Below, in pieces: positions 41,411 through 64,000 of a stretch of DNA of 64,000 bases. How positions within the stretch are numbered: position 1 is the stretch's first letter; every line of letters starts with the position of its first letter. Both the position numbers and the translations under genes were made by a program. Location: the NCBI GenBank assembly GCA_037447605.1, contig CM074820.1:1550001-1614000 (forward strand). Reading direction: 5' to 3'. Source of the stretch: Zygnema circumcarinatum SAG 698-1b (taxonomy: Eukaryota; Plantae; Zygnematophyceae). Under the pieces are notes generated by a model that did not search any database, was not told the DNA's origin, and saw nothing but the letters and a program-made list of their open reading frames with translations.

Positions 41411-43855
41411 ATGGATTCTCCCCTGCTGGGATTGAAAATGTCGTCCCGTGCAGCCAAACATTCAGGGAGGGCTGCACACATACCATATCTAACATGCGCA
41501 ACATCATGTATGGCATTCGTCATCGTTTGTTTCGTATGCAGAGGGGCCGCTTCCAGCTTTTGGAATACGAAATCCGGTGAGAATATGTAGTGTTTGAGAT
41601 TTTTTTGGCAATGAAATAGGGCTGTAATGTAAGGTGAGTTTGAAGCATTGAGCCTAAAACGGAAGTAGGGTTTCAAGATAGTTAGGGTTACTTGAGCAGA
41701 GGTCGATTGGTTTGGTTGGATATGAGAAGGAGAGGAAAGGGCGAAACAGAAATGGAGGGAGAAGGAAGGTTGAGGATGAGGGAATAGAGGGGCAGGGAGA
41801 GGGAGGAAGAGGGAGAGGAGGGAGAGGGAGGGACCGGGAAAAGGAGATGCAGGAGAGAGAGGGGAGAAGGAGGGGAGGGAGGTGGAGGGGGAGGGAGACA
41901 GGAGAGGCGGTTAGGACAAGAGAGGGATGACTGGGAGGGGGAGGATATAGGAAGAGTTGGGACTTGAGAGGGAGGGAGGAAGGGAAGGAGTGAGAGAAGA
42001 GATTGACTGTCTTCGTGATGTAGCTTTTGATTTCCTCTCCTTTTCATGCAGGAAAGTTTGTTCTCCAATCAAAGGCAGATTTCCATAACTTGTTTTTGAC
42101 ATTCCCGGACAACAATACTGCTTCTGAGCACCTCAAAATTCTCACTGAGCAGCCACACGTGGCAGGAAGCGCTGCAGACCGCAAAGTCACGGAATATGTG
42201 AAACAGAAATTCGAGGTGCCACTCTTTCCTGGAAATTCATACAACAAAAAAAAAATTACATTCGCAATCACCGTATATAACAATGGCATAGAAAAAAGGA
42301 CTGGAATTTTTGGGTTCGAGTGTTTTTTGTGATGTTTTAGGGCTTGATGTATGCTTTTAGGCTTTTGGGTTTTTTAGGGTTTGTAGGGTACTCTTAACTC
42401 ATGCATTACCCACCTTTTTTGTGCCCTATTTCTAATCTTCTGATATCATTTAACTGTTTTTTATCTTTTGTGCTTAACAGGAATATGGACTCTCAAAAAC
42501 TTATTTTGCCGATTTTGAGGTTTTGTTGACATATCCAATTTCCCGCTCTCTCTCTCTTCTCAGCCACAACAGAACGGAACTGAGTCTCCATGAAGCTGCG
42601 TTCAAGGACGATCCGTTCAGCGGAAACCCTAACATCATAGAAACCTTTCACGGATATTCGCCGAGCGGTGACGTGACAGGCGAAGTGGTGTATGCAAACT
42701 ATGGAAGTGCTGAAGATTTTGAAAAATTAGCAGAGTTGAATGTGAATGTGACCGGGGCTATCACATTGGTCCGATATGGAAAAATAAATCGCGCGAACAA
42801 GGTGAGAATATACCGTTAACAAAGTGAGTTTTTTGTAGGGTTTTTTTCTTTTTTTAAATGAAAAAACCACGTAGGAATAAGCAATTTTTCTTTCCTTATT
42901 GAGTTATGAATTGGGATGAACAGTGTTTAGAGATTCCTATATGTTCTAAAGATGAGCTGAAATGTTTTTTTTTCAGAAGAAGTGATGCCAGCGAAATTTT
43001 CGATGCGTTTTTTTTTTTTGGGGGGGCGGGGCAGGTGGAAAATTCTGCGAGTTCGGGTGCTATTGGGGTGTTGGTGTACTCTGATCCGAAGGACTATGCG
43101 CACAGCCTGAAGGAGGGGGTATACCCACACGCCAAGTAAACGCTCTATTCAAATTTGCCTAATTTGGGGACTTAGTGTAGTTGATCAATCGGTTAGTTTC
43201 AATTCCTTTCATTTGGCAATGTACATTACTTTAATGTGACAATTCTCGGCTTCAAAGAGTGCAGATGGCTGGGGAAGGAGAGGTTTAGGAGGCAGAGGAG
43301 AGAGATACGGTTGGGGGAGAGAGAGGGGAGAGAGAGAAGGGGATACGATAGGCAGGAGTGAAAGTGAAAAATGAGAGAGCGAAAGTAGGGTATGATAGGG
43401 GGACAACGAGAGAGAGGGGAGAGAGAGAGAAGGGGGTACGATAGGTAGGAGTGAAAGTGAAAAAGGAGAGAGAGAAAGTAGGGTACGATAGGGGGAGAAC
43501 AGAGAGGGGAGAGAGAGAGAAGGGGATACGATAGGCAGGAGTGAAAGTGAAAAATGAGAGAGCGAAAGTAGGGTATGATAGGGGGACAACGAGAGAGAGG
43601 GGAGAGAGAGAGAAGGGGGTACGATAGGTAGGAGTGAAAGTGAAAAAGGAGAGAGAGAAAGTAGGGTACGATAGGGGGAGAACAGAGAGGGGAGAGAGAG
43701 AGAAGGGGATACGATAGGCAGGAGTGAAAGTGAACAAGGAGAGAGAAAAAGTGGGGTACGATAAGGGGAGAACGAGAGAGAGGGGAGAGAGAGAGAGACG
43801 ATAGGGGGAGAGAGAGAGAGTCGAGAGAGAGAGAGACGATAGGGGGGAGGAGAGC

Positions 43856-43889
<34 letters not shown>

Positions 43890-46800
43890 TCGTCCCTCTC
43901 ATCCCGTGATTCCATCCCTATGCTCTACCTTCCTCTCCAACCCTAATTCCAAACCTAATTCCAAACCTAATCCCAACCCTAATCCCAAACCTAATCCCAA
44001 CCCTAATCCCAACCCTAATCCCAACCCTACCCTAATCCCAACCCTAATCCCAACCCTAATTCCAACCCTAATTTCCCTCCCTCAGATGGCTCCCTCCCTC
44101 GGGGGTCCAAAGAGGGTCCATCGCCTCCTTCAGAGGAGATCCGCTCACTCCATCCTGGCCGTCCGTTAAAGGAGCCGAGCGGCTGCCCGTGGACGATCCA
44201 ACGGTCCAGCTTCCCCCGATCCCCTCCCTCCCCATCTCATACGGGGATGCTTACCCAATTTTTTCCGGGCTGACCGGAAAATTTGCTCCGGAAGAGTGGT
44301 GGGGGGCTCTGAATTTGAGCGAATATCGGATTGGCCGAGGCCCGGCAAAAGTTCGTCTCAAGCTTGAGGTACATATTTTTTGGTGTAAAAAAGATATTTT
44401 TTAGAATTTAAGGGTATTTCTAAGAGAGCTTCTCTTAAAGAAAATAAGGAGTAAAAACAGTGTATCTTTTGAGATTCTTGTGTTTTTTTTTTAGGGTTTC
44501 TGGAGGTAGGCATATGTTGGACGGAAAAAAAAAAATGCTTGAATTTGAGGCCACATTTTCGAATATTACGCTTGTAACATTTTGTTTGTTATCCTTTTTC
44601 TCTTTAACTTTTTTTCTTTTAAAGATGAACAATACAGTGATGGAAATCCGCAATGTGCACGCGCTGATTGAGGGAGAGGAGGAGCCTGACAGGTATGTCA
44701 GATACGACAAACGTGCAAAGACTCTCTCTCTCTCTCTCTCCCACTCACTCTCCCTCTGTTGGTCCCATTTCTCTTTCCTTGCCCTTCTCTTCTCTCTCAC
44801 ATCCATTGCGAGTGCGCTTGCTCTCTCCCTCTCTTATTCTCGCCGTCCTTCAACACCTCTCTTGCTCTTCCGCTCTCTACCCTCCTTTTCTCTCCCACTC
44901 TCTCCCCCCTACTCCCTCTCCACTCTCTTTCTCCCTCCCACTTCCCCTCCCTCTTAATACTCTCTCCCTCTTCATCTCCCTCTTTCTCCCCCGCTCTCTC
45001 GCTTTTCCTCACTCTCTCCCCGTCTTTCTATCTTCATCTCTAGCTCCCAGTTCTCTCTCTCCCTCCCTCTCTTTCCCCCTCTCCCTCTCGCCCCCTCTCC
45101 GTCTTCTGCTCTCCCTCCGTTTCTCCCCCCTCGCCCTCTGTTCCCCCACTTCCTCTCTCTCCCTCGATTCCCCCCGTTCTCTTTCCCACTCTTTCTCTAT
45201 CTCTCCCCCCAACTCCCACTCTCCCCTACTCCTTCCTTCCCTCTCTCTCTCCACTCGCTCTCCCTCTCCCTCTCACTCCCCCCCTCCCTCCTCCCTCACT
45301 TTTTCCCACTCTCTCTCTCCCCCCCCTCTCTCTCACCCCTCTCTCTCCCGCTCTCTCTTCCCCCTCTCTTTCCCCTTCTCACTCCCCCCTCTCTTTCCCG
45401 CTCTCTCTCCCCCCACTCCCTCCATCACTCCCCCCCCTCACTCCCTCCCTCACTCCCCACCTCTCTCTCCCTCTCCCTCTCCCTCTCCCTCCCCCCCCAG
45501 GTACGTCCTCCTCGGCAACCACCACGACGCGTGGACCTTCGGCGCAGTGGATCCCAACAGTGGAACCACCGCCCTCCTGCAGGTCCACCTTCACAACCCT
45601 TGAACCTTTGATTCCGGAACCTTGATCCAATACCACCATTGGACACCATCTTACTGCCCTCCAACCCTAACCCTAACCCCAACCCTAACCCTAACCCCAA
45701 CCCTAACCCTAACCCCAACCCTAACCCTAACCCCAACCCTAACCCTAACCCCAACCCTAACCCTAACCCCAACCCTAACCCTAACCCCAACCCTAACCCT
45801 AACCCTAACCCTAACTCCTAACTCCCAACCCTAACTCCTAACTCCCAACCCCTAACCCTAACCCTAACCCTAACCCTAACCCCAACTCCTAACCCTAACC
45901 TCCCAACCCCTAACCCTAACCCTAACCTAACCCCTAACCCCAACCTCTAACCCTAACCCTAACCCCAACCTCTAACCCTAACCCCAACCCTAACCCTAAC
46001 CCCAACCCTAACCCTAACCCTAACCCTAACCTCTAACCCTAACCCCAACCCTAACCCTAACCCCAACCCTAACCCTAACCCCAACCCTAACCCTAACCCC
46101 AACCCTAACCCTAACCCCAACCCTAACCCTAACCCCAACCCTAACCCTAACCCCAACCCTAACCCTAACTCCTAACCCTAACTCCTAACCCTAACCCCAA
46201 CCCTAACCCTAACCCCAACCCTAACCCTAACCCTAACTCCCAACCCCTAACCCCAACCCTAACCCTAACTCCTAATCCTAACCCCCAACCCTAACTCCTA
46301 ACCCTAACCCTAACCCTAACCCCAATCCTAACCCTAACCCCAACCCTAACTCCTAACTCCCAACCCTAACCCTAACCCCAACCCTAACCCTAACCCCAAC
46401 CCTAACCCTAACCCCAACCCTAACCCTAACCCCAATCCTAACCCTAACCCTAACCCTAACCCCAACCCTCCCACCAATCCGGTGCGGTCCCTCTGCCAGG
46501 TGGCAGCCGCCCTGGGCCGTCTCCTCGAGGAGGGATGGCGTCCGCGGCGGACGGTGGTGCTCTGCAGTTGGGACGCGGAGGAGCAGGCTCTGGTGCCTCT
46601 CTCTCTCTCGCTCTCTCTCTCTCGCTCTCGCTCTCTCTCTCGTTTTCTCTCTCTCTCCATCTCTCACCCTCTCTTTCTCTCCCTCTCCATGTCTCTCCAT
46701 CACTCTCCATCTCTCTCCATCTCTCTCCATCTCTCTCTATCTCTCTCCACCTCCCTCTATCTCTCTCGCTTTCTCTCCATCACTCTCTCTCTTTCTCTCC

Positions 46801-48621
46801 ATCTCTCTTCTCTCTCTCTCTCCATCCTTCACTCTCGCCACCTCTCTCTCTTTCTCTCTCCCCCTCTCGCTCTAACCACCTCTCTCCCCATATCTCTCTC
46901 TCTCGCCATCTCTTCTCTCCATCTCTCTCTTTCGCCATCTCTCTCTCCACCTCTATCTCTCTCGCTTTCTCTCTGTCACTCTCTATCTCTTTCTCTCCAT
47001 CTCTCTCTCTCTCCATCCCTCACTCTCGCCATCTCTCTCTCTTTCTCTCTCCCCCTCTCTCTCTCTTATCACCTCTCTCCCCATATCTCTCTCTCTCGCC
47101 ATCTCTCCTCTCCATCTCTCTCTTTCGCCATCTCTCTCTCCACCTCGCCTTCTCTGTCTCTCTCTGCCCCCCCCCCGCCCCCCATCTCTCTCTCTCGCCC
47201 TCTTCTCATCCCTCTTCCCACCCTTCCTCTCACCTCTCTCCCCTCCCCGCTCTCTCTTCTCTCATCTCCCCCTCCCTCCCTTTCCAATGTTTCCTTTTCC
47301 CCCATTCCCTCAAAGATCCTTTCTTCTTCCCTCCTCCTATCCCTAATACCCTCTAACCCTCACCCCCCTCTCCCGTTATTATTACATTTTTCATAGATCG
47401 GTTCGTCCGAATGGGTCGAAGACAATGAAGAAATGCTTGTTTCTCGCGCAATCGCATACATAAATGTGGATGTGGGAGTATCCGCTCCCGGCACACTCTT
47501 TGCCGGGGCTACACCCCAATTAGACCCCTTAATTCGGAAAATTGCTGCTAAGGTAGGAGCACAAATCCCCCTCCCTCCCTTCCCCCGTGCAACGGATTCG
47601 TGCATAGAACGGCAGTTTTTGAAACAAAAAACTTTTGTTGGATGTTGGGTGGCAGGTGGAAGATCCCTGGAGAGAAGGCCAATCCCTGCTTGACACGTGG
47701 ACCTCCTGTTTCAACGAAACTGTGGGCATGGAAACGCGAGCTCGGGTTGGAGACTCGTCTCTCCTTTCCTGCTAATAATTAAGATAATTGAGATAATTAG
47801 GGATAAAATTGAGACGGATTTAACAAATTGAATCGAATTTGAATGTCAAATCGATTTGAAAATTGCATGCATGGGTATAGAACATGAGTAGTCGTTTTAT
47901 ATGCTCTCACGATTCTCCTCTTTCTCTCTATGCTTCTTCTCTCTCTCTCTCTCTTCTCTTCACTCTCTCTCTCTCGCCTCCCTTCTCCCTACATGCCGCT
48001 CCTCCTCTCTTCCGTTCTCGCCCTATCTCCCATATGCCTCTTTTTGCTCTCCTTCCCTCTCTCCCTCTTCCTCTCTCTCTCCCCCTCCATCTCTCTCTCT
48101 CTCTCTCCCTCCAGGTGGGGAGAGTGGGAGGCGCAGGGTCCGACTACGCTGCCTTTCTCTCTCATATTGGAGTGGCGAGCATCGATTTGGGCATCCATGC
48201 CGGTCCGCCCTCCCCCCTGTGAGAGAGAGGGGGGGGGGGAGGGAGGGGGAGAGAGAACAAAGGGGGAGAGATAGAGATAGGGGAGGGAGAGAGGGATTGG
48301 AAGAGGAAGGAAAAGATGGAGTGAGACCCTCCCTCTTTCTTGAGAGAGGGGCAGAGAGAGAGGGGAGGGCGGGAAGAGGGAGATAGATATCGAGAGGGAG
48401 AGAGAAAGCGAGACGAGAGAGAGAGAGAGAGAGAGGAGGACGAGAAGGATTGGGAGTAGTGGAGAAGGGGGACTGAGACCCTCCCTCTTGCGTGAGAGAG
48501 GGGGGGAGGGGGGAAGAGAGAGAGTGGGATGGGGAGAGGAGAAAGTGAGAGCCATTTGCTTGCGGGAGGGGAGAGAGTGGGAGAACGAGGGGGAATGAGA
48601 ATAGAGAGAGAGAGAGAGAGG

Positions 48622-48703
<82 letters not shown>

Positions 48704-50308
48704 CCTATTACGTTCTCACCTGTTTGCCTCTCCCGCAGAGGACGGGTCGGGCTATCCCGTCTACCACTCCGCCTTCGACAACTTCCATTGGGCTCAAACG
48801 TTCGGCGATCCGGGCTTCCAGTTCCATGCGGCGAGTCAGTTCCGTTCTGTTCCGTTCAGTTCCATTGGGCCCAACTGTTACGGCCAGTTATATGTGAAGC
48901 TTCAGAGATGAAATTTGGGAGTTGCAGGGCCTCCATTTGGGCCTCCGTATTTCCCTGAAGTGAAAAAAATCCGTTGAACTAATTTTTTTTCCATTTTTTT
49001 TTTCTTTTTTTGCTTTATTTTCAGTTGCAAAGGTCTTTGGCCTTTTGGCCCTCAATTTGGCGGATGAACTTTTGCTCCCTTTTGACTATGGGAACTATGC
49101 GGAGCAGCTCAAGGTGGGAGAGATATATAGCGTATATATATTAATACTAAAAAGAATAATTTAATATGTAATTGTAGGGTCTAAAGATTCAATTATTTAC
49201 AAGATACTGAGATAAAGCTGTCCTTACGGTTTTGAAGTTTCTAATTTTCACGATTTGGTTGGTTTTTGTTGAAATGTACGGTTTTGGGAATGTCAGGGCT
49301 TGAGTGATTTTTTGGTTCTTTTGTTTTTTCGGAGAATTGGGTATTTTTTATCGGATGGTTTTTGACAAGTTTGCGGGAGAGATTCAGGTGTACGTGGCAG
49401 CCCTTGATTCGCAGCTGAAAGCTGAAAATGGGAGCGAGAAAGTGAGCACGGAGGCTCTTCACTCCGCCGTTGAGTACTTTGAGGATTCTGCGGCGGCTGG
49501 AGAGAGGGAGGCGCAGGTGAGTGGGAGAGGGAGAGGGAGAGGGAGAGGGAGTGGGAGAGGGAGAGGGAGAGGNNNNNNNNNNGGGGTTGTGGAGGGAGGG
49601 GAAAGGAAAAGAAAGATTCATAGTATAGAATGAGCAAAGTAGGTTTTTCTGTCGTAAGGATACGTGATTACCTGCCAAAGCTGCCCCTCTATATGCTTCA
49701 AATCTTGTAACTGTAACGGAATTATATTGTCCCACATGTGCCCCGTTTCTCCACAGAAACTCCGCAAAGAGCTCGAGAAATACCGCTCGTCCGATGTGCC
49801 CCGTTCCATTGAACGGAAACTGAGAGAGCTCAACGACCGCCTCATGTTAACGGAGAGAGCGTTTGTGAGCCCCGAGGGCATACGTGGCAGGCCGTGGTTT
49901 CGCCACCTGGTGCGCTCCTATTGGCTCTCGCTGAAATAGAACCATTTATACCCCATTGTTTTTTCACGTTTTGCGTGACATTGCGTGTTCAAGTTCACAC
50001 TTTTTCTCACTTTCTCTCAATTCTGGGACTCGTTTGACTGTTCGAACTGAGTTTGGAATCCTTACAGCAATTTGATTTGGAACTGAAACTGAAACTGACT
50101 CAATGCGCATGGAAACGCTCAGGTCTATGCTCCCGCAGCCGGAAATTTTTACGGAACGGCGGCATTCCCTGCCGTTGCGGATGCTTTGGCAGTTGCGAAA
50201 AAAGGATCATCGAACTCAGATTCATGGAAAGAAGTTCAACATGAAATTTTTCGAGTTTCCCGGGCAATCACGAAAGCTGGAAGAGTGCTTTCGGGCGAAT
50301 TGAAGTAG
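41411..50308 (+). CDS. AMP1: Glutamate carboxypeptidase II family (M28B), AMP1/LAMP1-like type II membrane peptidase
   Basis: N-terminal TM ([13 protein letters not shown]); [14 protein letters not shown]; [20 protein letters not shown]; [13 protein letters not shown]; [11 protein letters not shown]; [11 protein letters not shown]; [15 protein letters not shown]|[22 protein letters not shown]; WDAEEQAL|IGSSEWVE; AYINVD; GSDYAAF; YHSAFDN; [19 protein letters not shown]|VYAP...VLSGELK*. Confidence 0.95.
43290..43790. repeat. Intronic GA-rich minisatellite, ~90-bp subunits in a ~180-bp dimer
   Basis: Repeated gatacgataggcaggagtgaaagtgaaaaa...gtagggtatgatagggggacaacg / gtacgataggtaggagtgaaagtg units, about 5 subunits. 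Confidence 0.85.
43935..44075. repeat. (CCCAACCCTAAT)n telomere-like tract in an AMP1 intron
   Basis: 12-bp unit c(c)caaccctaat, about 11 copies, ending just before an acceptor. Confidence 0.85.
45661..46465. repeat. ~800-bp interstitial TTAGGG-type telomeric array inside an AMP1 intron, with an 18-bp higher-order unit (AACCCT)2AACCCC
   Basis: Direct reading: ccaaccctaaccctaaccccaaccctaaccctaacccc... continuous for about 800 bp, flanked by in-phase AMP1 exons. Confidence 0.95.
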
Positions 50309-51339
50309 GTCGAAATTTGAAGGGGAATTTCGACAGAGAGCAGAAAATGGCTGAGCCAGTGTGCCAAGTGTACAGTGTGTAAAGTAAAGCTGGAGGTCGA
50401 AATGTGAAAAAAAATCTGAAACGATAGTCTCAAAGGATGTTAAAACTTTTTCAGATGGGCAGGGGTCCGATCACTCTGTCGAACGTGGCCTAAATTTTTG
50501 AATGGTTCTGAAAGACAAGTGTTATGAGGCACGTCAAAATTTCGAATTGAACTTCATACATTTCTTCTCGGGGGCTGAACTGGACAAGAAGGACATTTTC
50601 CTTTGAAAAAGAAATATTTCTTGGATTTTCCTTATTCTTTTCGAGAGGGGGATGGTTTGGATCAAAAAAGTGATTTCGTTTAAATTGCTTGAAAACACAT
50701 TGCTGTACTGATAGCTTATAGCACTGAAAACCTCTCCCTCTCTTTCCCCCTCTCCTTCTCTCTCGTTCGCAAGCTGCTCTTTCTCTTTTCTCTCCCCCCT
50801 CCACCTCCCTCCCTCCCTCCCTGCTTAAAAGTCTTGAGGATATTTATGTTGGATTACTAATATGGTCCAAAAAACCAAGGACAGAAGTATCCCCATTTCT
50901 CAACAACGAAGTAAAGGACGATTGTTTTCCTAAAGTAAAACCCAAGAGTACGAAAGTAAAAAGATTTCTAGCTTCAAAGATAAACAAACAATTGCAGAAA
51001 CATTTAAAAAACGTTTCGAAGTATGAGACAGACGAACTTTACAATCCTCGAAATTAGGGTTTCAGCGGCACATTTTTATCTGCTGCTCGAAAGGAGCTTT
51101 CTTCCAAGCACCCCCCCTCGCGCACTAACCAATTGCCGCTCAGATATAAAAAAGCGGGAAAGAAAAAAGAAAAGGAAAAACAGCAGGAGAGAGAGAGAGA
51201 AAACCAAAGTCAACAAATCTCTCCCACCGTGTATCAACCCTTAAATCTTCCTCTCCGTCTTGTTCCTTACCCCAATGTACAACTACAGCCCTTCCCATCT
51301 CCTCCTCTTCCTGGAGTTATTCCGACGCTCAAACCCTAA

Positions 51340-51830
51340 CCACCCCCTCCCCCCCCCTCTCTGAGTCCTTTCCTCCTCCCCCCCCCCCCTCTCTGAACCC
51401 TTCCCTCCCTCCCTCCCTCCCTCTCTGAACCCTTCCCTCCCTCCCTCCCTCCCTCTCTGAACCCTTCCCTCCCTCCCTCCCTCCCTCTCTGAACCCTTCC
51501 CTCCCTCCCTCCCTCCCTCACTCCCTCTCTGAACCCTTCCTTCCCTCCCTCCCTCCCTCCCTCTCTGAACCCTTCCCTCCCTCCCTCACTCCCTCTCTGA
51601 ACCCTTCCCTCCCTCCCTCCTCCCTCACTGAACCCTTCCTTCCCTCCCTCCCTCCCTCTCTGAACCCTTCCCTCCCTCCCTCCCTCCCTCACTCCCTCTC
51701 TGAACCCTTCCTTCCCTCCCTCCCTCCCTCTCTGAACCCTTCCCTCCCTCCCTCCCTCCCTCTCTGAACCCTTCCCTCCCTCCCTCCCTCCCTCTCTGAA
51801 CCCTTCCCTCCCTCCCTCCCTCCCTCCCTC
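51340..51830. repeat. Minisatellite CTCTGAACCCTTCCCTCCCTCCC(TCCC)n, also present in the NFU intron at ~52290-52490
   Basis: About 15 units of 25-40 bp, each seeded by tgaaccct and followed by (ctcc)n. Confidence 0.85.
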
Positions 51831-51838
51831 CCTCTCCT

Positions 51839-52818
51839 TTACAATAACTGCACCGCCGCAATGGATGGAATCTTCTCCCTCAGTTTCTGCGTGACGGCGA
51901 CGCGTACGGTCATCACGCCGGCAGCAGGACCATCGATTCGGACCTTTGCAACCGGACCGTCGATCTTCACAAGGGAGAGCTCGCCGCCTCCTGTGCCCGA
52001 AAGGTACGGCCGGATCTCCGCCAAAACCTGAAAAAAATAATAACTGGGAAGTAATTGGTCAAAGAGATGGTAGTTAATGAGTTAATTTACATTCTTAGAC
52101 TAGGTTCAAGCTCCCACCAACATGAAGCCAAACCTGGAACATAAGAGTCCCCAACACCAACCCCCTCTAGACTCCTCCCGCTCCCACACACTCCCACTTC
52201 CGCTCTCTCGCATCCTCTCCTCCCTACCTTCTCCCCCTTCCCTCCCAGCCCACCCTCCCCCATCCCCCTCCCTTCCTTCCTCGCCTTCCTCCCTCCCTCC
52301 TCTGAACCCTTCCCTCCCTCCCTCCCTCTGAACCCTTCCTCCCTCCCTCCTCTGAACCCTTCCTTCCCTCCCCTCCCTCCCTCCTCCCTCCCTCCCTCCC
52401 TCCCTCCCTCCCTCCCTCCCTCTGAACCCTTCCCTCCTCCCTCCCTCCCTCCCTCCCTCCCTCCCTCCTCTCTGAACCCTTCCCTCCCTCCATCCCTCTC
52501 TCTCTCTCCCACCTTCTCCACATTCTCCTCCGTGAGTGCGAGCCCCGTCTCCGTGTCCATGACCTGCTCCACCTCCGTTATCTCCGGAATCCTCTCTATG
52601 AGGCGCCGCTCGAGGCCCATCTTCATGGTGAGAGTGGAGCTCGGGCAGGACCCGCACGCGCCCTTGAGCAGCAGCCGCACTTTCAGACCGTCGATCTCGC
52701 ACAGCTCCACATCTCCACCGTCCGCCATGAGGTACGGCCGCACCTCGTCCAGGACCAGCTCCACGTTCTCCTCCGTCAGCTCGAGGCCCTCCACGGAGAC
52801 TTCTTCCGAAGCCAAGGC
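51839..52818 (-). CDS. NFU2/NFU3: Plastid NifU-like Fe-S cluster carrier NFU2/NFU3 (last two exons; transit-peptide exons not resolved)
   Basis: [69 protein letters not shown]...[10 protein letters not shown]|[62 protein letters not shown]. This is a CxxC NFU domain plus the redox-inactive second NFU domain. Confidence 0.95.
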
Positions 52819-55800
52819 CTTCAGAGGGGAGCCTGGAAAGGGAGGAAGGGGGAGAGGAGGGGGTGAGGGAGGAGGGAGGGAGGGAGGGAGGGAGGGAGGG
52901 AGGGAGAGAGGGAGGGGAGGGAGGGAGGGAGGGAGGGAGGGAGGAGGGAGGGAGGGAGGGAGGAGGAGGAGGAGGGAGGGAGGGAGGAGGAGGAAGGGAG
53001 GGAGGGAGGGAGGGAGGGAGGGAGGAGGGAGGGAGGGAGGGAGGGAGGGAGGGAGGGAGGGAGAGGGGAGGGAGGGAGGGAGGGAGGGAGGGAGGAGGGA
53101 GGGAGGGAGGGAAACGGGGAGGAAAGGATGGGGAAAAGAGGGAGAGGGAAGGGGGGGAGCCAGGGGGTGGAGGGGGAGGAGAAAAGGAAGGAGGAAGGCG
53201 AAGAAACAGCGAAACAGGGGGGAATGGAAGGGGAGGGAAAGGGGGGGGGTGGAATTTATGCGTATTCGCGCGCATCATAAAACTGTTGCGAAGAACGGAC
53301 TGGAGAGAACAAAACATCATGACGAGCAGCTCTATGTACTTCGAGCTGGATCTCCGTAATGGCATGTTTGAATTTGAACCTAGACTCCATCACTTTTTGT
53401 CAATTCTGTGTGGGAGGGAGAGATAGAGGGAGAGGGAGAGGGAGAGCGAGGAGTGGGAGAGGCACAGCGACAGAGAGCGACGGAGAGAGGGAGAGAGAGA
53501 CGGAGAGGCAGGAGTGGGAAAGATAGAGCGACAGAGAGAGAGGGAGGGAGTGGGAGAGGCAGAGCGACAGAGAGAGTGAAGGTAATTAGAAGGGAGGGAT
53601 GGGGGATGAGAGAGGGGGGGCCGAGGGCGGGAGGGGAGAGGAGAAGAGGGAGGCGAAGGAGGGTGAGGGGGGTGAGAGGGGGAATGAGGAGGGAGAGGGA
53701 CGGAGAGGGGAGGGCGAGGGAGGAGCGGGGCGGGATGAGAGGGAGGAAGGGAGAAGGTGAAAACCACGGGAGAGGGGGAGGGAGGGGGAGCAATTTCTAG
53801 CTATGTGTGCTTCGTCTAAACTGATCTGACGCCTGTCAGCCCCCCCTCCTTGAAGCAGGCGGGGCATGACATGTGCACGGCGACCCGCTTTAGAGAGTGT
53901 GCACTACCGCATACATCTGTTCTTTCTATAAGGGTTAACCCGCCCAATTAAACCTGGAAGAGGAAGGGAGGAGGGGAGTATGGGAGGTTGGGATGGAAGG
54001 GAGGGAGGGAGAGGGGGAAAAGGAAGGAGAGAATAAGGGAAAAAGGGGTAGGGAGGGAAGGAGGGAGGGAGAGGAGGAGGAGGAGGGAGAGGGGGAAGGG
54101 GAGGGAGAAGAGAGGTAGGGACGGCATGAAGGGGCGAGGGGGGGAATGAAGGGAGAAAAAAAGAGGGAGAGAGAGGGGAGAGGGAGAGGAGGGGGGGGGA
54201 AGGGGGGGGGCGCAAGAAAACCTTCCTTTCCCTCCCCTTTTTTTGTATACTGTTAAATGTTCTCCTCGACCTCTCCCTTACCCATTTTTTCCCCACTCCC
54301 TATCTCTCTCTAACACGCACACTTCGTCCCAAGAGGGAGAAGGCAAGGGAGAGGGAGAAGGCGACGGAGAGGGAGAAGGCGAGGGGGAGAGAGCGAAGAG
54401 AGAGAGGGAGAGGGAGAGACAGAGGGGGAGGGGGAGGGAGAGGGAGAGAGAGAGGGGGGGGGGAGGAAGAGGGGGAGGGGGAGGGAAAGGGAGCGGGGGA
54501 GGTGGAGAGAGAGAGAGAGGGTGAGGGAGAGGGGGAGGAAGAATGACGGACTCCAGCAAATCGTGGGCCGCCACCTGGGCCGCGTGCATGGGGCTGGCCA
54601 CCAGCGCTGCAGAGGGGGCGAGACTAGGCAGACACATACAGTAAAGAGGAAAGAAAAAAAGTCTAAATTAACGAAGATGGGTTTTGTGAGGTTAGAGCTC
54701 ATCACCTCGTTGAGGCTCGGCCCCTAGACTCCGTCTCCGCCTGCTCGCATGAGAAACCCTAATTTGGTGCGCAAGGCTGGTCTCGCTTTTAGACATCTGT
54801 AACACGACCGCAAATTTAAATCAACACTTTGCAATAAAACTGTAATCAAGGGGCTGGACAGCTGTAAAATTGCTTCATTGGATTTTTTTTTTTCCCCCAA
54901 ATCTCCCATGCCCCAAATCGACTATTCACCGCATCATTGCATCCTGAAACCAGGAGGTCTAATCCCCTGCCCTAATCCCCATCCGTACCATGCGTACCTG
55001 CACATGCGCATGCAGCCGATGCGGCGTATGCACCCCCATGACGTGACGTGACGTCCCCATGGCTCCCCCATGCATGCCCACATCCATGCGCGCCATCCCC
55101 ATCGTCTCCATGCTACTCGTGAACCTTCAACCCTAACCCTAATCCTTGACCCCTTCAATCCCAGCAACTGCAAATTTCGAAAAGGGCTCTGCGCCTTCCC
55201 TCCTTATCCTTCCTCCTTACTCTCTCTCCCTCACTCTCCCTCTCCTTCTCCCTCTCCCTTTCCCTTCTCTCTTTCCCGCTCTCCCTCTCTCTCTCTCTCT
55301 CCCTCCCTCACACCCTCCCTCTCTCTCTCCCTCTCCCTCACTCTTTCTCCCCCTTGTTTCTCTCCCTCTCTCCCTCCCTCTCTCGCTCTCTTCCTCTCTC
55401 CCTCTCCCTCACTCTCTCCCTCTCTCTCACGCGTTCGATCGCTTCAGGGAGAACCTGCGCTTCTTAAAGTTTAGAAGAGGGCGAAATTAGGGTTCCTGCA
55501 GGTTTGCAACCGCGCCCTCGACTCAAAAGTTTTTCACAGGCAGTTTTCCGCAACGTTTCCTCCCGAGCCGAAGGTGCATCGAATCTGGCCTTGAAACCGG
55601 CCCCGGCCGATTTTTCATCGAGCCTTGATTGGTCCGAAACATGAGAAGGCTGGTTCAGGATCCACTTCTGGATCCACTTTCTTCTCAATTTTGGGCTATT
55701 TTGGGCTGTGAATTAATCACCACCAACGGTGACTCGCCGCGTGTTCAGTTTGGTCCACATTGCGCTTTGGTTGAGTATTTGTCGTCAGTTCTCACGATGA

Positions 55801-55869
55801 GTGGATCCGCGATTCCACCGCGTGCTCGCACTATTGTATACGTGACGTCACAGGGTCGCATTGGCTCTT

Positions 55870-56067
55870 GGCCACGTGACGCCACGTCACCTGATGACGT
55901 TGTCGTCAGTGCCACGTGGCGGCTCCTGGACCGTACAGATTATAGAAAGAATCGGACGACTGCAGGCATGCCACGTGGCATCACTTTTGCTTTTCGCCCT
56001 GATCGCTGTCTACGTGGCCGTCTCCAATGCGCGGCCTCTGGAGAGCCACGTCAGTGCGCCACGTGGC
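55870..56067. promoter_or_regulatory. Cluster of G-box palindromes (CACGTG core; three perfect GCCACGTGGC) at the 5' end of cupin gene A
   Basis: gccacgtgac 55871, gccacgtggc 55911, 55970 and 56058, plus gccacgtca variants. Function as bZIP/bHLH sites is inferred from the known G-box consensus. Confidence 0.45.
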
Positions 56068-57791
56068 GAAGTAGATGCTGACGTGGAGGCCTCGCGGGCG
56101 TTCGATGCGGATGTTAACCTTGTACGGCTGAGTTTTGAGGAGGAGCTGACGGTGGATCCGCGGCAGGATCACCGGCGGGGGTGGATGGTGGATCCGATCA
56201 AGGCGGCTGAGAAAGCCGGGCTGCAGGGTAACTATAAACCCTAAAATCCTAAACCCTCAACCCCCAACTCTAAACTCTTAACCCCAGTTTTATCGAGGTT
56301 TAGGGGTTTGGGATTTTGTCTGGTTTTCTAAAACCTTCGTAAGGATCTTAACTGTAGGGGAAGGGGGGGTTAAGGGTTTAGGGTTTAAAGGTTAGGGTGT
56401 AAGGTGTAGGGTTTAAAGGTTAGGGTTTAGGTTTAGGTTTAGGTTTTAGGTTTAGGTTTTAGGGTTTAAGGTTTAGGGTTAAGGGTTTAGGGTTTAGAGT
56501 ATAGGGTTTTTGGATTTGGTCAGGGGGAAGAGTGGGGGATCTCGTTATTTTTTTTAGACGCCGTGGAACTCCGAATAGCCCTAAAACCCTAATCATCCCT
56601 TGACCCCTACGACAACCCCCGAAACCCTACAACGGAGGGTGGAAGGCTGGGGTTTAGGGTTTAAGGGTTTTTAGGGTATCGCAGGATTGAACTTCCGGAA
56701 CACTTTATGGCCATGTTTCTTACGAATGCAATTGTCCTCCCTCTCTTCCCCCCCTCTGTCTCTCTCTTTCTCTCTCACTCTCTGTGTCTCTCGCTTTCTC
56801 TCTTTTCCTCCCTCTCTCTCTCTCTCGTCTTATTCGTATTTGTTTATTGTCTCTTGATTTTTTTCTTATCTTTATTTGGCCCATCCAGGAGGCGCGCTCG
56901 CCTGTGTGGAGGTGCATCTGGGGCAGGTCTACCCGGGGAAGGTTCGCGGAAATCACCGGCATCATCACTGCAACGAAACGTTCATTCTGTGGGGGGCCAA
57001 ACAACGCTTCCGGGTGGGCTCGCAACCCTCAACCCTACTTCTGAAACCCTAAATGTTAAACCCTAAACCCTGCAAACCTCTCTCCTTTTTCGTAAAGGGG
57101 AGACATGTCCCATTCCGTATTTGCTGAACAGGAAAGCAGAAACTGCCCACGGATTGTTCAACATGATCATAATCTGAAGTTCTCCCCTAAAGAAATTAAT
57201 CAAACGAGCATTTTGTTTCCAAATTAAACCTTACAAGCTATTGGCGTTACAACCTGATTTTTTTCTTACCGCGATTGTGCTTGAACGAGTATAATTCCAG
57301 TTTATGCTTTTGGGGTTTAGAGTTTACGGTGTATGGTTTAGGGTATGTGGTTTATGATTTAGCGTTAGTGGGTTTAGGGTTTATGATTTGTAGATTATGG
57401 TTTAGGGTTTGTGTTTATGATTGAGCATTCATGGTTTTAGGGTTTAGGGTTTTACAGTTTAAAGGTGCATGGTTGATGGTTTGTGGATCATAATTTCGGG
57501 TATGTGATTTATGGGTTTTGGGTTTATCTTGAGGGCTTATGGAATTTTTTGGTTTTTGGTTTTTGGTTTTTGGTTTTTGGTTTGCAGCTCGAGAACCCAA
57601 ACTCCCCAAAAGGCTATTCGGAGGTGGTCCTAGGCCCTGCTGACGTGGCGGTGGCCGCCGGGCGGGCGGGTTTGGCGCATGCGATCGCGAGCGAGGACAC
57701 GCGGGCGGTAGCGTACCTGCTGGCGTGTCAGGACGGGGCCTATGACGTCAGCAACCCGCGGACCGACTACAACGTCTGGCCGGACTTGTGA
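55894..57791 (+). CDS. Membrane-anchored RmlC-like cupin, paralogue A (nucleotide-sugar epimerase/isomerase fold)
   Basis: Signal anchor ASLLLFALIAVYVAV; RGWMVDPIKAAEKAGLQ|GGALACVEVHLGQVYPGKVRGNHRHHHCNETFILWGAKQRFR|LENPNSPKGYSEVVLGPADVAVAAGRAGLAHAIASED...LLACQD...DYNVWPDL*. Carries the cupin H-x-H...E...H metal motif and resembles the land-plant RmlC-type family (recalled, not searched). Confidence 0.85.
56237..56680. repeat. Alternating C-rich and G-rich telomere-like tracts in cupin A intron 1
   Basis: aaaccctaaaatcctaaaccct (56237-56285), then tttaggg-rich (56305-56520), then ccctaaaaccct (56579-56630), then gggtttaggg (56649-56680). Confidence 0.8.
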
Positions 57792-58435
57792 ATAAAATTT
57801 GGGCTTTGGGGTCGGCCTCGAGAAGAGGGGCTTTGGGTTCAGCGCGAAGGGTTGGACCCGCTCTGTATATTGTTTCTAGTTGTGTTATGTTCTCTCTCTC
57901 TTTCTCTCTCTCTCGCTCTCTCGCTCTGTCTGGCTTTCTCTCTCTCTCTCTCTCTCACGCACACACTCATAAATTCATTGGTAATGTAATAATGAAAAAA
58001 AGGAAGCTCGGTCAAAAAGTACAATCAAGATGACGTAAATGACATTAAAAGGTTTGAAACGGAAAATGAAATGAATGTGACGGAAACAGAAACAGAAGCC
58101 CCCAACACGCGCCTCCCTCCTTCCCCTTCGAAACCCTTCGTTCCTTTCTTTCGGTGGCCTGCCCGCCTCTCCCTTGACTCATATTTTTGGTGGTCAGTCT
58201 TCCAAAAACCTTTCATCAACGATATTGGGCAGCCGTAAAAAAATATATTGAAGCTCAGCCTCTCCCCTTACTGACCTTTCAATAGAGTGAGGGATCACTC
58301 CATCTCCCTCTCCCTCTCTCCCTCTCCCTCTCTCCCTCTCGCTCTCTCTCTTTCCCTCCCTCTCTCTGCCTTAAAAATACGAGTCATGAAAATCATAAAA
58401 TACCGGTTAATTTAACCAACCTACTCCGATTCAGT

Positions 58436-59834
58436 TCAACGAACAGCGGTTTCCTCATCGTTCTCGTCGTCCACCATTCTGGCAGAGGACGAGAGAGGAA
58501 GCTTCTCGGAAGGTGAGCTTGTGACAGGTGTCACACTGGAGGCTCGCTCGCTTCCTTTTGAGGTCGAATTTCCGTACCATATCATGCCCATGATAGCAAT
58601 CACCATCCCGGAAACAACCTGAAAACACATAAAACCCTTGCCCCCCAAGGAAACAGTTGAAACTGGAGAAAGGGGACGAGAGAGAGAAAGAGAGAGAGGG
58701 AGAAAAGGGGAGAGGAGGGGGAGAGGGAGGGAGGTTCAAAGGTTTTAAGGGTCTCAGAGATTTTTAGGGTTTGTGAGCAAATTCTTGCCTGCAGACTGAG
58801 GCCTTCTCTTCCAAACATTGTGAATCCGAGAACGAGAACGAGAACTGTCTTCATGTGACCGAGCACTTGGAACGTAACGGCCGTAAAACGGCCGATGCAT
58901 ATAAATTGGCTCAAGTTCACGCCAACCGCCATGAGGCAGGAAGTTCCTATGCAGGCCTGCAGCTTCCCAGAAGCTCATCGTCAGTTTACCACAGTTTTTG
59001 CCACTTGTGAGTGGCACATTGCGGCGGTGAGAAAGATTGAGGGTAAATGACGGAGTCGACGTGATGCACGAAAGGCGAGGGAGTGAGAGAGAGAGAAAGA
59101 GGGGAAGGAGGGAGGGGGCAGAGGGAGTGGACAGGGAGAGCGTGAGGGAGAAGGAGAGGGGGGGGAGAGAGCGAGAGCGAGAGAAAGAGGGAGAGAGAGT
59201 GCGAGCCCAAACTTACCACTACAGGGAGAGCGTGAGGGAGAAGGAGAGAGAGGGAGAGAGCGAGAGCGAGAGAAAGAGGGAGAGAGAGTGAGAGCCCAAA
59301 CTTACCACTACAGGGAGAGGGTGAGGGAGAAGGAGAGGGGGGGGAGAGAGCGAGAGCGAGAGCGAGAGCGAAAGAGGGAGAGAGAGAGAGAGAGAGTGAG
59401 AGCTCCAAACCCACCACTGAGGGCACGCTGTAGTCGTACTTATCGACCCTTAGCCCCGCGAGGAGATAGTCCGCGAGCGGCCCCGCGAGGAGGAGGGAGG
59501 TCGCCTGCAGGGGCGCGGTGTGCGCGAGGAGGTCGAAGGACCCCACGCGGTATCGCTTCTGCAGGAAGTGGACGTACTGCCACGTGGACATGGAACAAGG
59601 AAAGGAGAAAGTAAATTAGGGTTTAAGGTCTACCTCGGAGGGATGAAGTTGAGAGTGGGAGAATAATCGGAATCGATTGATTTCTCTCTCTCTCTCTCTC
59701 ATTTTTTCTTTTTCTGTTTCTCATTCTCCCTCTCTCATCTCTCCCTCTCTCTCTCTCACTCTCTCCCTCTCTCTCTCTCTCCTTCGCTCATCTTTTCCTC
59801 TCTCTCCCTCTCCCTCTCTCTCTCTCCCTCTCTC

Positions 59835-59870
<36 letters not shown>

Positions 59871-61486
59871 TCGCCACTGTCTATCCCCTCTCTCTCCTGC
59901 CCTTTCCCCTCTTCTCCACTCGTGTCCTGACTCTCCAACAATCATCGCTATAGTTCACTAGACTCCCCTCCCTGCAAGGTGCGGGTATAACTCCCCGACT
60001 CACCTCAACTTCCATAAACTTTCCAAAAAATTTCAATCCATTCATTCAAAGAATTCTATCGAAACATCGACGAAATTCGAAGGGAAGTTTGCCAGAACAC
60101 TCACATACTGCTGTACGGCTGTGCTCCAAACGGCGATAGCGGCAGCTATGAACCCTTTTGCATTAACGCTGACGTCAGAGACCGTACAAATCCCGACCCC
60201 TCCAAGAACCACGAGGATGCTCAGTTTGGTGCTCCGTGAATACTTCACACCGTCGAAGAGAATCTCCAGAAGGCAAGATACTGGAATCATGCTCAGTTTG
60301 GCAATCTGGGCAGCAAAAAGAAAGTAAAATCTGAATAAGAAAATGGAAGGAGAATGGACGTAGAAAGAAAGGGAGAGGTCGAATAGGAATCAGCAAAGTT
60401 AGGGTTTAGTTTCTTTGAGGGCGAGATGCAAGGCACAGAAGGTGCAGTAGAAGGGAGGATTAGAGAGAGGATCTGTAGAAGCATATGCATGAAGAAATCA
60501 TGCAAAGAATGCTTCCACGCGGGTGAAAAGTGCCATGAATAACCAGTGACGTCATGAAGATGCAATGTTGATATCGTCGTGGTTTAACGATGACATGGCA
60601 GTGATGCAACCGTTCAAGTGAGGGTTGCTTTCATTTTGTTTATGTGTATATGCATGCAAGCACGAACGTACAAAAACATATCTATGTTTTTGCATGCATG
60701 GATGTATGTCTGAATAAAATGCATGTATGCACGTAGCCAAACATGCCTTATGTGAATGAATGTACGTGTCTATGGATGTCTCCAAGCATGCCCATGTGTA
60801 TGTGCATGCATGCATGCGGCAGTGCACCTGGTAGAAGCCGACGCTGTTCCACATGAGGCTGACGTTCATGGCGACGATCGAGACGTTGGCGGTCGCCGCG
60901 AACTTGAGAACCTCCGCGAGGGGGAGGGAGGAGGGCGGGAGGAACCCGCACGTGCGAAGGCCCACCGTCATCAGGGCCGTCATCATGAAGTGGAAGCCGG
61001 TCAGGGTAGTGGCTGAGGGAAGCAGGGAAGGGAGGGAAGGGAGAGGGGGACGGGGGGGAGAGGGAGGGAGGGAGGGAGAGAGGGAGGGAGGGAGAGAGGG
61101 AGGGAGGGAGGAAGGGAGGGAGGGAGGAAGGGAGGGAGGGAGGGAGGGAAAAAGGAAAGTAAATTAGGCCAAAATCGCTGAAATACAGAATGCAACGTAG
61201 TTCACTCTGAACATATTCAAAACATTCGAAGGAACCAAAGCCCTGATATCCAAGCCCTTCTCTCAACCCGCCTGCAACCAAAGGCTGCAGAGCTGCAGGG
61301 TTCAGCACCACAGCTTTCCGTCCCCCATTGCAAGGGTCCAGGAATTAGGGTTTTACCGAAGGTGAATCCGTACAGCGACATGAGCTGCTTGTTGATGAGA
61401 ATAATGCCGACGGATGAGGATATGTTGAACAGCCATGCGCCCACATCCACCACACGCTCCTTATCCCTGCTCTCGTAGGGCGCCAT
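58436..61486 (-). CDS. URGT: Golgi nucleotide-sugar transporter, UDP-rhamnose/UDP-galactose transporter (URGT3-6 type)
   Basis: [43 protein letters not shown]|ATTLTGFHF...[14 protein letters not shown]|[30 protein letters not shown]...[10 protein letters not shown]|YVHFLQKRY...HTAPLQA...|...[24 protein letters not shown]...FGREGLSLQ|[17 protein letters not shown]...*. Close to the Arabidopsis URGT5/6-type sequence as recalled. Confidence 0.93.
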
Positions 61487-62471
61487 GGCTGGCACCTGTC
61501 ACCACTCACCTGTCACCTAACAGCAGGACATGAATGGATGGCAATGGCTATGGCTATGGCTATGGTGCGATCTATGTGGCGTGTTTCTGCTCCTCTATGC
61601 CCATGGCATGTCTACATGCATGGGCATGGGCAAGGGCATGGGCATGGTATGGGCATGGCATGAGCCTGCAGATCAGAATGGGTATACGATGGATCGGTAT
61701 GGGGAAGTAGGGTTCAGGGTCAGGGTTTTGAACAAAGGAAGAAGTGAAGGATTCAGGGTTCAGGGTAAGGGTTTCGGAAAGAACGTTGAGGTTCAGGGTA
61801 AGGGCTCAGGGTTCAGGGATTTCCTTGAAAGGAAAGTTGGAGGTTCAGGGTGTTTTGCAGCACGCGAAGTCCATACTCGCCTTCTGCCGTGGCTCGACGT
61901 TCCCTGTTTAGACTTGTACGGTCAACGCCGTGCCAAAAATGCCGTACAGTAAATGCCCTACCGTACTGTTGGGTGAGACAAAACAAGCAGGACCGTCTTG
62001 TTGTCGCTTCTGACAAATTCTAGCCTCTGACGAATCAGAACGTACCTAATACGGTAAATCGTAGAATCTAAAGAATTTTTAAAGCGAATCAGATGTTGTC
62101 ACGTGGCAGTGCCTCTTCCGGCAATGATGACTTCATTAGGGAACGACAATCTTTCGATGTTTGCAAAATATCTGGTAGAAACTAGTACATTTTTATGACT
62201 AATCTAAAATAATATATTCTAATTGTAAAGTACTGATTTTAAAATAAACCGGAACACAAAAATCTCGTTTCGGGAAAATCAGTGCGAGGAATCCACGATA
62301 AATAATCCAGGAGCGACGAATGACGACTCGCCACGTGAAATTCGTGCATATGGCAGCCTCTCATTGGCCCAATTTCTGTACCGGCCTCGCACTCGTTTGC
62401 GATGATAAAATTCCCATCGGCTCCCCGCAAAATCCGCAGCTCCGCCTCCTGTGCAGCTGCCACGTGTCGCC

Positions 62472-63549
62472 ATGCGGGGGCGGGCTTTTTCCCGGAAGCT
62501 TCGTCCGTACCTCGCGCGGATCCTCCTCGGGCAGGCCGTCCTGCTGCTCCTTTTAGGGTTTGCATACGTGGCGTACCGCCTGAGCGGCCGGGGCCGCCAC
62601 GTGGCGTCCACGGAGGAGAGCCGCGTGGCGTGGGAGAAGGCGGAGGCCAATGCCGTGCGGCTGCGCGACGATCCGAGGGACGAGCGCGGGTGGATCGTCT
62701 CGCCGCTGCTGCAGGCGGAGCGGCACGGCCTCGCGGGTGGGGAGGGGTTCAGGAATTAGGGTTCAGGGTTTAGGGGTTGGGGGTTGGGGTTTAGGGTTTA
62801 GATTTTAGGGTTAGGCTTTAGGGTTTAGGGTTTAGGGGTGAAAGGCTAGGGCTTAGGGGCTAGGGGTTAGGGGGTTAAGTGTTAGGGGCTGAAGGGTGAG
62901 GGTTTAGGGTTTATGGGTGAAAGGTTAGGGGTTAGGGGCTAGGGGTTAGGGGGTTAAGTGTTAGGGGGTTAAGGGTTAGGGTTTAGGGTTTAGGGCTAAA
63001 AGTGATGGCTCAGGGTTTGGGACTGTTCGGGATTGGGTTGAGGGTTCTGGGATTGTTCAGATTGTAGAGATAGGTTTCAGGGCTTAGGGCTAGAATTCAG
63101 GGTTTAGGGTTCGGGAAGTTGTTTGGGCTTGACATTGGGGGCTGATGGTTGAGGGTATGGCCTTTTTGAGCTTGGGGTTGAGAATAGAGGGTTTTGCGGT
63201 ACAACGTTTGATGTTGGGGTTGTAAATTTGGGGTTTGAGTAGTAAGGTTAGGGATTGTTTAGGGTTACAATTAGGATAAGAGTTAGAGTTAAAGTGAGTA
63301 TAATGTTCTGGTTACAACTGATTATGTTCGGGTGCTGATGCTTATGTCATGCAGAGCGAGCATTGCTTCCTACCTATGCGTACTTTGCATGACTAAAACC
63401 CTGAGCTCCCGTGCTGCCACGTGGCAGGGGCGCAATCCTGCTTGGATGTGAGCGTGGGGACTGTCCTCCCGTTTCACACGCGCGCCAACCATCGCCATCA
63501 CAGCAAGAACGAGTCCTTCATTGTGTGGGGAGCTAAAGCATTGTGGCGC
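62472..63549 (+). CDS. Membrane-anchored RmlC-like cupin, paralogue B (first two exons; continues beyond the window)
   Basis: Signal anchor ILLGQAVLLLLLGFAYVAY; RGWIVSPLLQAERHGLA|GGAQSCLDVSVGTVLPFHTRANHRHHSKNESFIVWGAKALWR|gtatgt. Intron positions match paralogue A. Confidence 0.85.
62745..63290. repeat. Degenerate TTTAGGG/TTAGGGG telomere-like array filling cupin B intron 1
   Basis: Dense ttagggg, tttaggg and gggttcag variants decaying towards 63290. Confidence 0.85.
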
Positions 63550-63949
63550 GTATGTCCCCCCCTCTCCCTGTATCTCTTTCGAACTCCCTCCCCACTCCCC
63601 CTCCCCCTCCCTCCCTCCATCCCTCCCCTTCCCCTCCCCCTATCCCTCCCTCTCTCCCTCTCTCCTTCCCTCCCCCTTCCCTCCCGTTTCCACTACCCCT
63701 CCCTCTCTCCTTCCCGCCCCCTTACCTTCCCCTTCCCCTACCCCTTTTGCTCTCTTTCTCTCATTCCCTCCCCCTTCCCCTCCCCCTAACCCTCCCTCCC
63801 TCTCTCCTTCCCCACTCAGCTCCCCAACGCCCTTCCAATCTCACTCCCTAAACAAATCAAGCCCATGCCAAGAGCACCTATACTACACCACTCGTGTATG
63901 TCTGGGATGGCTATGGCCTGACATGGAGGCATGGGATGTACTCGGCGCG

Positions 63950-63989
<40 letters not shown>

Positions 63990-64000
63990 GGTCATGGGCA

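Follow-up and report, generated by a model that had tools for sequence, protein, structure and literature searches.

An old pair of CapF-like cupin genes beside a putative nucleotide-sugar transporter gene in Zygnema circumcarinatum, a neighborhood that is probably lineage-specific

The last part of a 64,000-nucleotide (nt) stretch of the Zygnema circumcarinatum SAG 698-1b genome (contig CM074820.1, positions 1,550,001–1,614,000; termed here the window, whose own numbering is used below) carries two genes for related cupin proteins, cupin A and cupin B, with a gene for a predicted transporter between them. The question raised by this locus is whether the three genes form a functional unit that imports and remodels a nucleotide sugar, or whether the cupins belong to a family with a role of its own and the transporter is a neighbor in this lineage. 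The best explanation overall, with a probability of roughly 0.6, is that both cupins are CapF-type proteins facing the lumen of the secretory pathway and that their transporter neighborhood is lineage-specific and not a dedicated cluster.

The models of the three genes were assembled by hand from open reading frames and splice signals (Table 1). This region of the window is eukaryotic DNA, its exons being short and its introns rich in simple repeats. The cupin A product has a chain length of 220 amino acids (aa) encoded by three exons, every junction is GT-AG, and the cupin motif RGNHRHHHCNETF is at positions 56945–56983. Residues 38–220 of the spliced cupin A display a 58% aa sequence identity to P0001, a 247-aa protein of Mesotaenium; the identity to P0008 is 59%, and dozens of further proteins also align. 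The intron positions match those in Spirodela, in Amborella and in many plant contigs. The end-to-end alignment with homologues, together with these common intron positions, validates the cupin A model. For cupin B, 129 aa are visible and the last exon is past the end of the window; the corresponding motif, RANHRHHSKNESF, is at positions 63481–63519. Cupins A and B show an identity of 45% over 99 residues (E-value = 2e-21), and both intron positions are common to the two genes. A first-pass annotation of this DNA had proposed two paralogous cupins with a transporter between them and had quoted the two motifs; three intron-containing genes are indeed present in these places, and both motifs were located.

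In-frame exons, and not the spliced window proteins, served as queries in the database, family and Atlas searches, and the orthologue P0001 served in the fold search. A word search with the exon 1 open reading frame of cupin A gave no match, an Atlas search with exon 3 gave no usable match, and a PDB search with exon 3 gave nothing meaningful. Five sequencing runs of the same organism, from two studies, contain 46%–61% of the words sampled from positions 55750–61700; this is a measure of presence only.

When a profile made from two exon 2 sequences was used to scan 1.84 billion representatives, 93 proteins were found at E-value = 0.001 or less. Named members in streptophyte algae are ME000373S06340 and ME000373S06333 of Mesotaenium endlicherianum, SM000206S06251 of Spirogloea, and a protein of Chara braunii. 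In ferns and gymnosperms the family is found in Pteridium, Picea, Pinus, Cryptomeria and Welwitschia, and in angiosperms in Amborella, Spirodela, Curcuma, Zingiber, Asimina, Stephania, Cichorium, Flemingia, Carya, Melia and others. Further members come from two euglenids and from picoeukaryote-like metagenome contigs. All of the named members are uncharacterised and carry automatic names, e.g. “CapF C-terminal domain-containing protein” and “RmlC-type cupin”. A literature search yielded no paper on the plant cupin family and none naming the Mesotaenium scaffold ME000373S.

The closest known relative of the family is the cupin domain of bacterial CapF. A family profile (A2, an alignment of 24 full-length members) matched Staphylococcus aureus Cap5F in a PDB search with an E-value of 2e-12 over 87 positions; the next PDB family was MncA (E-value = 0.0025), and oxalate decarboxylase was found at E-value = 0.076. 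A Foldseek search with the model of the Mesotaenium orthologue gave CapF entries as its top five hits, with identities of 30%–31% and a root mean square deviation (rmsd) of 2.2–2.6 Å. The rest of the top 50 were RmlC, FdtA, QdtA, FdtD, EvaD, NovW, ChmJ, StrM and GDP-heptose epimerases, as well as several engineered metalloproteins. The cupin beta-barrel of this model is superposable on that of CapF (29%–31% identity, rmsd 2.3 Å over about 100 residues). The two share the motif G-N-H-x-H-H-x-x-N-E-x-F, the second His motif and the C-terminal stretch D-P-x-x-P-x-T. The CapF motif that had been given in the first-pass annotation, GNHWHHTKNEKF, is present exactly in PDB entry 2zkl.

The Pfam family PF14667 scores 31.3, 32.2 and 30.4 bits in P0001, P0008 and P0068 (cut-off 28.7), and 16.7 and 20.4 bits, below the cut-off, on the 41-aa exon pieces of the window, which were scanned in place of the whole spliced protein. 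PF14667 is cited in papers among flippase/MATE-type transporter families; the copy used here matches CapF-type cupins together with Cupin_2 and FdtA, and its name, “Polysacc_synt_C”, is a poor guide. Because of this use of PF14667 for transporter families, the case for a relationship to CapF is made here from the direct comparisons with CapF, and the Pfam name is not counted as evidence.

The 24-member alignment shows N, H, H, R, H and N to be invariant, with a nearly invariant E and two nearly invariant Cys residues, and its columns include the classic cupin metal site, His-x-His, Glu, His. Cupin A keeps all of the metal ligands and both Cys residues; cupin B keeps those that are within its visible part. 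The family residues H, H, R, G and F correspond to His288, His290, Lys285, Gly286 and Phe297 of CapF, which line the CapF pocket, where the cupin zinc is essential for the epimerase step (PMC5393024).

CapF differs from the family in being a cytosolic bacterial enzyme of two domains. In CapF, epimerisation at C3 comes first and reduction at C4 follows (PMC3699295), the epimerised product being reduced by the N-terminal SDR domain. Unlike CapF, the algal and plant cupins have no SDR domain; they display an N-terminal anchor and stem, two conserved Cys residues, and a conserved D-x-R-G-W segment before the barrel. The similarity to other sugar-nucleotide cupins is much lower: the RmlC 3,5-epimerases and the FdtA/QdtA/FdtD/WlaR 3,4-ketoisomerases, which act on dTDP- or GDP-4-keto-6-deoxy sugars, show an identity of 8%–19% to the family. 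They have His/Tyr or His/His acid-base pairs and are without the four-ligand metal site that is kept in the algal and plant cupins.

A bacterial stand-alone relative, P0105 (E-value = 7e-14 to the profile), provides a genomic context. Its gene is located between an aminotransferase/acetyltransferase gene on one side and methyltransferase and glycosyltransferase genes on the other, and CapD/FlaA1-type SDR genes (4,6-dehydratase-type) are present upstream. This neighborhood is a typical sugar-nucleotide pathway cluster.

Cupins A and B and 17 out of 20 homologues checked by hydropathy have one N-terminal hydrophobic segment of about 19–30 residues. In the land-plant homologues it is found 30–75 residues from the N-terminus, and because it starts so late a signal anchor fits better than a cleaved signal peptide. 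The AlphaFold (AF2) model of the Mesotaenium orthologue displays a helix and a disordered stem followed by the cupin, with a pLDDT above 94 in the barrel. None of the 24 aligned members has an SDR domain; their N-terminal part is made up of a tail, followed by a hydrophobic helix and then a disordered stem. The family members share one plan, a stand-alone CapF-type cupin domain that is preceded by one N-terminal membrane anchor and a stem of variable length. Two annotated proteins depart from this build and may be gene-model fusions: P0015 (Stephania japonica), in which the cupin is joined to an AMPK-type glycogen-binding CBM, and P0019 (Sesamum angolense), in which it is joined to half of an MFS transporter.

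The anchor is predicted from the amino acid sequence to direct the cupin domain into the secretory-pathway lumen, in the manner of a Golgi-type type II protein. The predicted build of short tail, signal anchor, stem and luminal catalytic domain would match that of the type II enzymes that interconvert nucleotide sugars in the plant Golgi, i.e. UXS, GAE and UXE/MUR4, all of which are SDR-fold enzymes. The algal and plant cupins would share with these the logic of sugar-nucleotide remodelling in the Golgi but differ in fold, cupin in place of SDR. No cupin-fold luminal sugar-nucleotide enzyme is described in the literature searched. A type II membrane build had been proposed in the first-pass annotation, as had a place for the cupins near CapF, RmlC and FdtA and the lack of a described function for the plant family. 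The segments seen here, the profile and structure searches, and the automatic names of the members agree with these proposals.

A mechanism can be suggested on this basis. The luminal cupin domain would use His-x-His, Glu and His to coordinate a divalent metal, in the way that zinc is bound by CapF, and would catalyse proton exchange beside a keto group, i.e. epimerisation or keto-isomerisation of a keto-sugar nucleotide. A luminal, metal-dependent epimerase or isomerase activity of cupins A and B on such a substrate is a tentative proposal, to which we give slightly less than even odds.

A different role for the same proteins should be considered. They could be luminal or secreted metal-binding cupins that do not act on sugar nucleotides (germin-like or auxin-binding protein 1-like, oxidase-type, or metal handlers), and the likeness to CapF would then reflect shared ancestry of the metal-cupin core. 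The four-ligand site is the classic one, the predicted location is secretory, an SDR partner domain is absent, exon 2 gives a weak match to Auxin_BP, and the family profile also touches MncA and oxalate decarboxylase; all of these are consistent with such a role. Yet the 29%–31% identity is specific to CapF, and the CapF match is better by about ten orders of magnitude than that of the next PDB family. CapF pocket residues beyond the metal ligands are also kept (PMC5393024), and the stand-alone bacterial relative P0105 is encoded in a sugar-nucleotide pathway cluster. A role away from sugar nucleotides is on these grounds unlikely.

The history of the two copies bears on the meaning of their present arrangement. 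In a maximum-likelihood tree rooted on three bacterial-type cupins, cupin A groups with Mesotaenium ME000373S06340, Spirogloea and three transcript-derived proteins (support 99/92). This group is sister to the ferns, gymnosperms and angiosperms (96/85), and Chara is next. Cupin B groups with Mesotaenium ME000373S06333, P0010 and P0004 (98/89), outside of the group formed by cupin A and the land plants; its clade consists of algae only, none being seen in land plants among the sequences sampled. As judged from this tree, cupin A is orthologous to the family members of land plants and Chara, and A and B are ancient paralogues. Since A and B fall in separate clades, the duplication that gave rise to them is old. 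The two Mesotaenium orthologues are both on scaffold ME000373S, seven gene numbers apart, and because they lie on one scaffold the A–B linkage predates the split from Mesotaenium. Two points are new here: the split into A and B clades, with B restricted to algae, and the retention of paralogue linkage in two Zygnematophyceae.

The gene between the cupins encodes a predicted protein of the TPT/NST family. It has five introns, with four GT donors and one GC donor. The latter is at the end of exon 5 (position 58789, CAG|GCAAGA) and gives a GC-AG intron predicted from the sequence; it was chosen because the sole nearby GT donor shifts the frame out of the last membrane span. Exon 3, a 67-aa piece, matches Pfam TPT with 27.5 bits (E-value = 2.6e-6), just below the whole-protein cut-off of 30, and the nearest Atlas clusters are streptophyte TPT proteins. 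PDB searches with exons 3 and 5 gave nothing meaningful. The hydropathy profile displays many membrane spans, the first from about residue 12, and because it starts so near the N-terminus a plastid transit peptide is predicted to be absent. Membership of the TPT/DMT superfamily, many spans and the lack of a transit peptide are what a transporter of the URGT clade would show, and the protein displays them. A Lys-Thr motif, GHMKT, is at aa position 259.

The conserved stretches of the transporter are presumably closer to those of the URGTs than to those of the UXTs. Arabidopsis URGT1-6 are Golgi UDP-rhamnose/UDP-galactose transporters that carry UDP-Rha and UDP-Gal in vitro (PMC7752924). The window protein resembles them in being a TPT-family protein of 342 aa with many spans, no transit peptide and the Lys-Thr motif. 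As a part of the preferred explanation, the gene product is probably a nucleotide-sugar transporter of endomembranes that belongs to the TPT/NST superfamily.

The start codons of the transporter and cupin B genes are divergent and 985 bp apart, close to the approximate 1 kb given previously, so that the two genes would share a divergent promoter region of this length. The stop codons of the cupin A and transporter genes are convergent and 644 bp apart. The palindromic G-box/ABRE-like motif CACGTGGC has 38 occurrences in the window, where 0.5 would be expected, and is clustered at the 5′ ends of cupin A (55871–56067) and cupin B (62100–62605, and 63416). It is also found inside the coding part of exon 1 in both cupins, and at 4472, 10603–10870, 11363–11394, 25258–26688 and 30516, which are apparent 5′ ends of other genes. 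The G-box clusters were considered as a mark of specific co-regulation and rejected as such: since the motif is clustered at several other places in the window, it is a common feature of the genome and not a mark of the three genes.

Cupin loci from other genomes were compared for the neighborhood. The set includes Spirodela, Amborella, Chara, several compact picoeukaryote contigs, two metagenomic algal contigs, and 34 further metagenome loci found with a narrower family alignment (A3). Most loci were fetched with up to 10 kb per side; there are 43 in all, of which about 17 are independent with at least 5 kb of flank. One of the metagenomic algal contigs (L006) carries a B-type cupin and is the only other genomic locus of the B clade in the set. 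A tblastn search of the spliced transporter against the 43 loci gave no match at E-value = 0.01 or less, none of the annotated neighbors in these loci has a TPT, UAA or Nuc_sug_transp domain, and a second cupin copy was found in none of the loci compared. Linkage of non-homologous partners kept across species, as expected of a gene cluster, is thus not seen among them. Conserved cupin–transporter linkage is absent within 10 kb in the approximately 17 independent loci, and such absence had been named in the first-pass annotation itself as a result that would speak against its proposal.

Other neighbors of the cupin do recur. In Spirodela and Amborella a metacaspase gene (Peptidase_C14) is directly downstream of the cupin orthologue (L001, 12957–13990, and L008, 23557–24921), which suggests an old microsynteny in angiosperms. 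On picoeukaryote-like contigs, in two cupin subclades, the cupin gene and a spermine/spermidine synthase gene form a divergent pair (L002, 8640–9620; L003, 3849–4829; and the 33.7-kb ENA contig of P0057).

The alternative that the three genes are a functional unit can be set against these data. The transporter would bring UDP-Rha, UDP-Gal or a keto intermediate as a UDP-sugar into the Golgi, the cupins would convert it to an unusual sugar donor for polymers of the cell wall or mucilage, and cupin B and the transporter would be co-regulated. The theme is fitting, as CapF-type luminal cupins adjoin a nucleotide-sugar transporter; the divergent spacer is just 985 bp long, and G-box sites cluster in this spacer as well as at the 5′ ends of both cupin genes. 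An A–B linkage kept since before the split from Mesotaenium hints at selection on the neighborhood, and from the family sizes the chance of a neighbor from this transporter superfamily is low. But in about 17 other loci, the B-clade locus L006 included, no transporter is found up to 10 kb from the cupin; the angiosperm orthologues keep a metacaspase neighbor instead, and the G-box motif is common at other genes of the window. Plants also produce their UDP-Rha by means of cytosolic SDR-fold enzymes and need no cupin for it, and the finding was picked from a very large scan in which one thematic coincidence is expected. The cluster idea is weak on present evidence, and a functional unit of this kind has a low probability. 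Still less probable, and best described as quite unlikely, is the combined proposal of an undescribed class of Golgi-luminal zinc-type cupins (in streptophytes, prasinophyte-like picoeukaryotes and euglenids) derived from the CapF epimerase domain together with a true three-gene unit at this locus. A recent tandem duplication with a chance insertion, the fallback offered in the first-pass annotation, is rejected, since A and B belong to separate old clades of the tree.

The preferred explanation, of luminal CapF-type cupins in a lineage-specific neighborhood, has several points against it. In some members, the anchor may instead be a signal peptide that is cleaved. In motif 2 of cupin A, Ser takes the place of a family-invariant Asn and Arg that of a near-invariant Pro, and cupin B has Ser for a near-invariant His. 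We know of no 4-keto sugar nucleotide that is a luminal metabolite in plants, and no partner dehydratase or reductase was seen at the locus. The locus comparison leaves out the closest relatives, i.e. Mesotaenium, Spirogloea and other Zygnematophyceae genomes. The nucleotide-sugar transporter superfamily has some tens of genes per genome, which gives a chance of about 0.2% per neighbor; a transporter neighbor is therefore rare by chance and speaks for a functional link, and against a lineage-specific neighborhood. In our reading, the cupin–transporter neighborhood most likely represents a lineage-specific arrangement around an old and still-linked paralogue pair.

Table 1. Features of the cupin–transporter locus (positions in the window; aa, amino acids).
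Feature	Position	Strand	Description
Cupin A exon 1	55894–56227	+	Short N-terminal tail, hydrophobic anchor (aa ~20–49), stem, start of conserved domain (RRGWMVDP); aligns with homologues
Cupin A exon 2	56889–57013	+	Cupin motif 1; predicted metal ligands His134, His136, Glu141
Cupin A exon 3	57588–57791	+	Cupin motif 2 (His184), second conserved Cys, C-terminal TDYxVW motif, stop codon
TPT/NST-family transporter gene	58436–61486	-	6 exons, 342 aa
Transporter exons	61486–61357, 61012–60828, 60305–60105, 59576–59415, 58956–58789, 58618–58436	-	From open reading frames and splice signals
Divergent intergenic region	61487–62471		985 bp, common to transporter and cupin B; G-box-like CACGTGGC at 62100, 62330, 62459
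Cupin B exon 1	62472–62736	+	Basic tail, hydrophobic anchor (aa ~10–37), stem
Cupin B exon 2	63428–63549	+	Cupin motif 1

Two further features of the window were observed. Degenerate plant-type telomere repeats (TTTAGGG, about 20–35 copies each) are present at positions 56367–56509, 57309–57452 and 62745–62995. These tracts occupy both introns of cupin A and the first intron of cupin B, and their G-strand is the sense strand. The three introns contain 16 of the 23 near-perfect double TTTAGGG units of the window, the rest being at 4.5–4.8 kb, 21 kb and 30.3 kb. Upstream of cupin A, at positions 37470–53365, there are ten long open reading frames of strongly skewed, low-complexity sequence; none of these ten, between 37 and 53 kb, gave a Pfam match.

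The sugar-nucleotide interconversions known from the lumen of the plant Golgi all rely, to our knowledge, on SDR-fold enzymes. A CapF-type metal cupin that is conserved, membrane-anchored and oriented toward the lumen would bring a new class of enzyme into the biosynthesis of wall sugars. If the proposed activity is true, luminal epimerisation or isomerisation of a keto-sugar nucleotide would provide a pathway to a sugar of the wall or mucilage for which no biosynthesis is yet known, and luminal cupin enzymes could explain sugars with still-unknown donors. The family extends from Chara and the Zygnematophyceae to the angiosperms under automatic names only, and this makes it a concrete and testable candidate.

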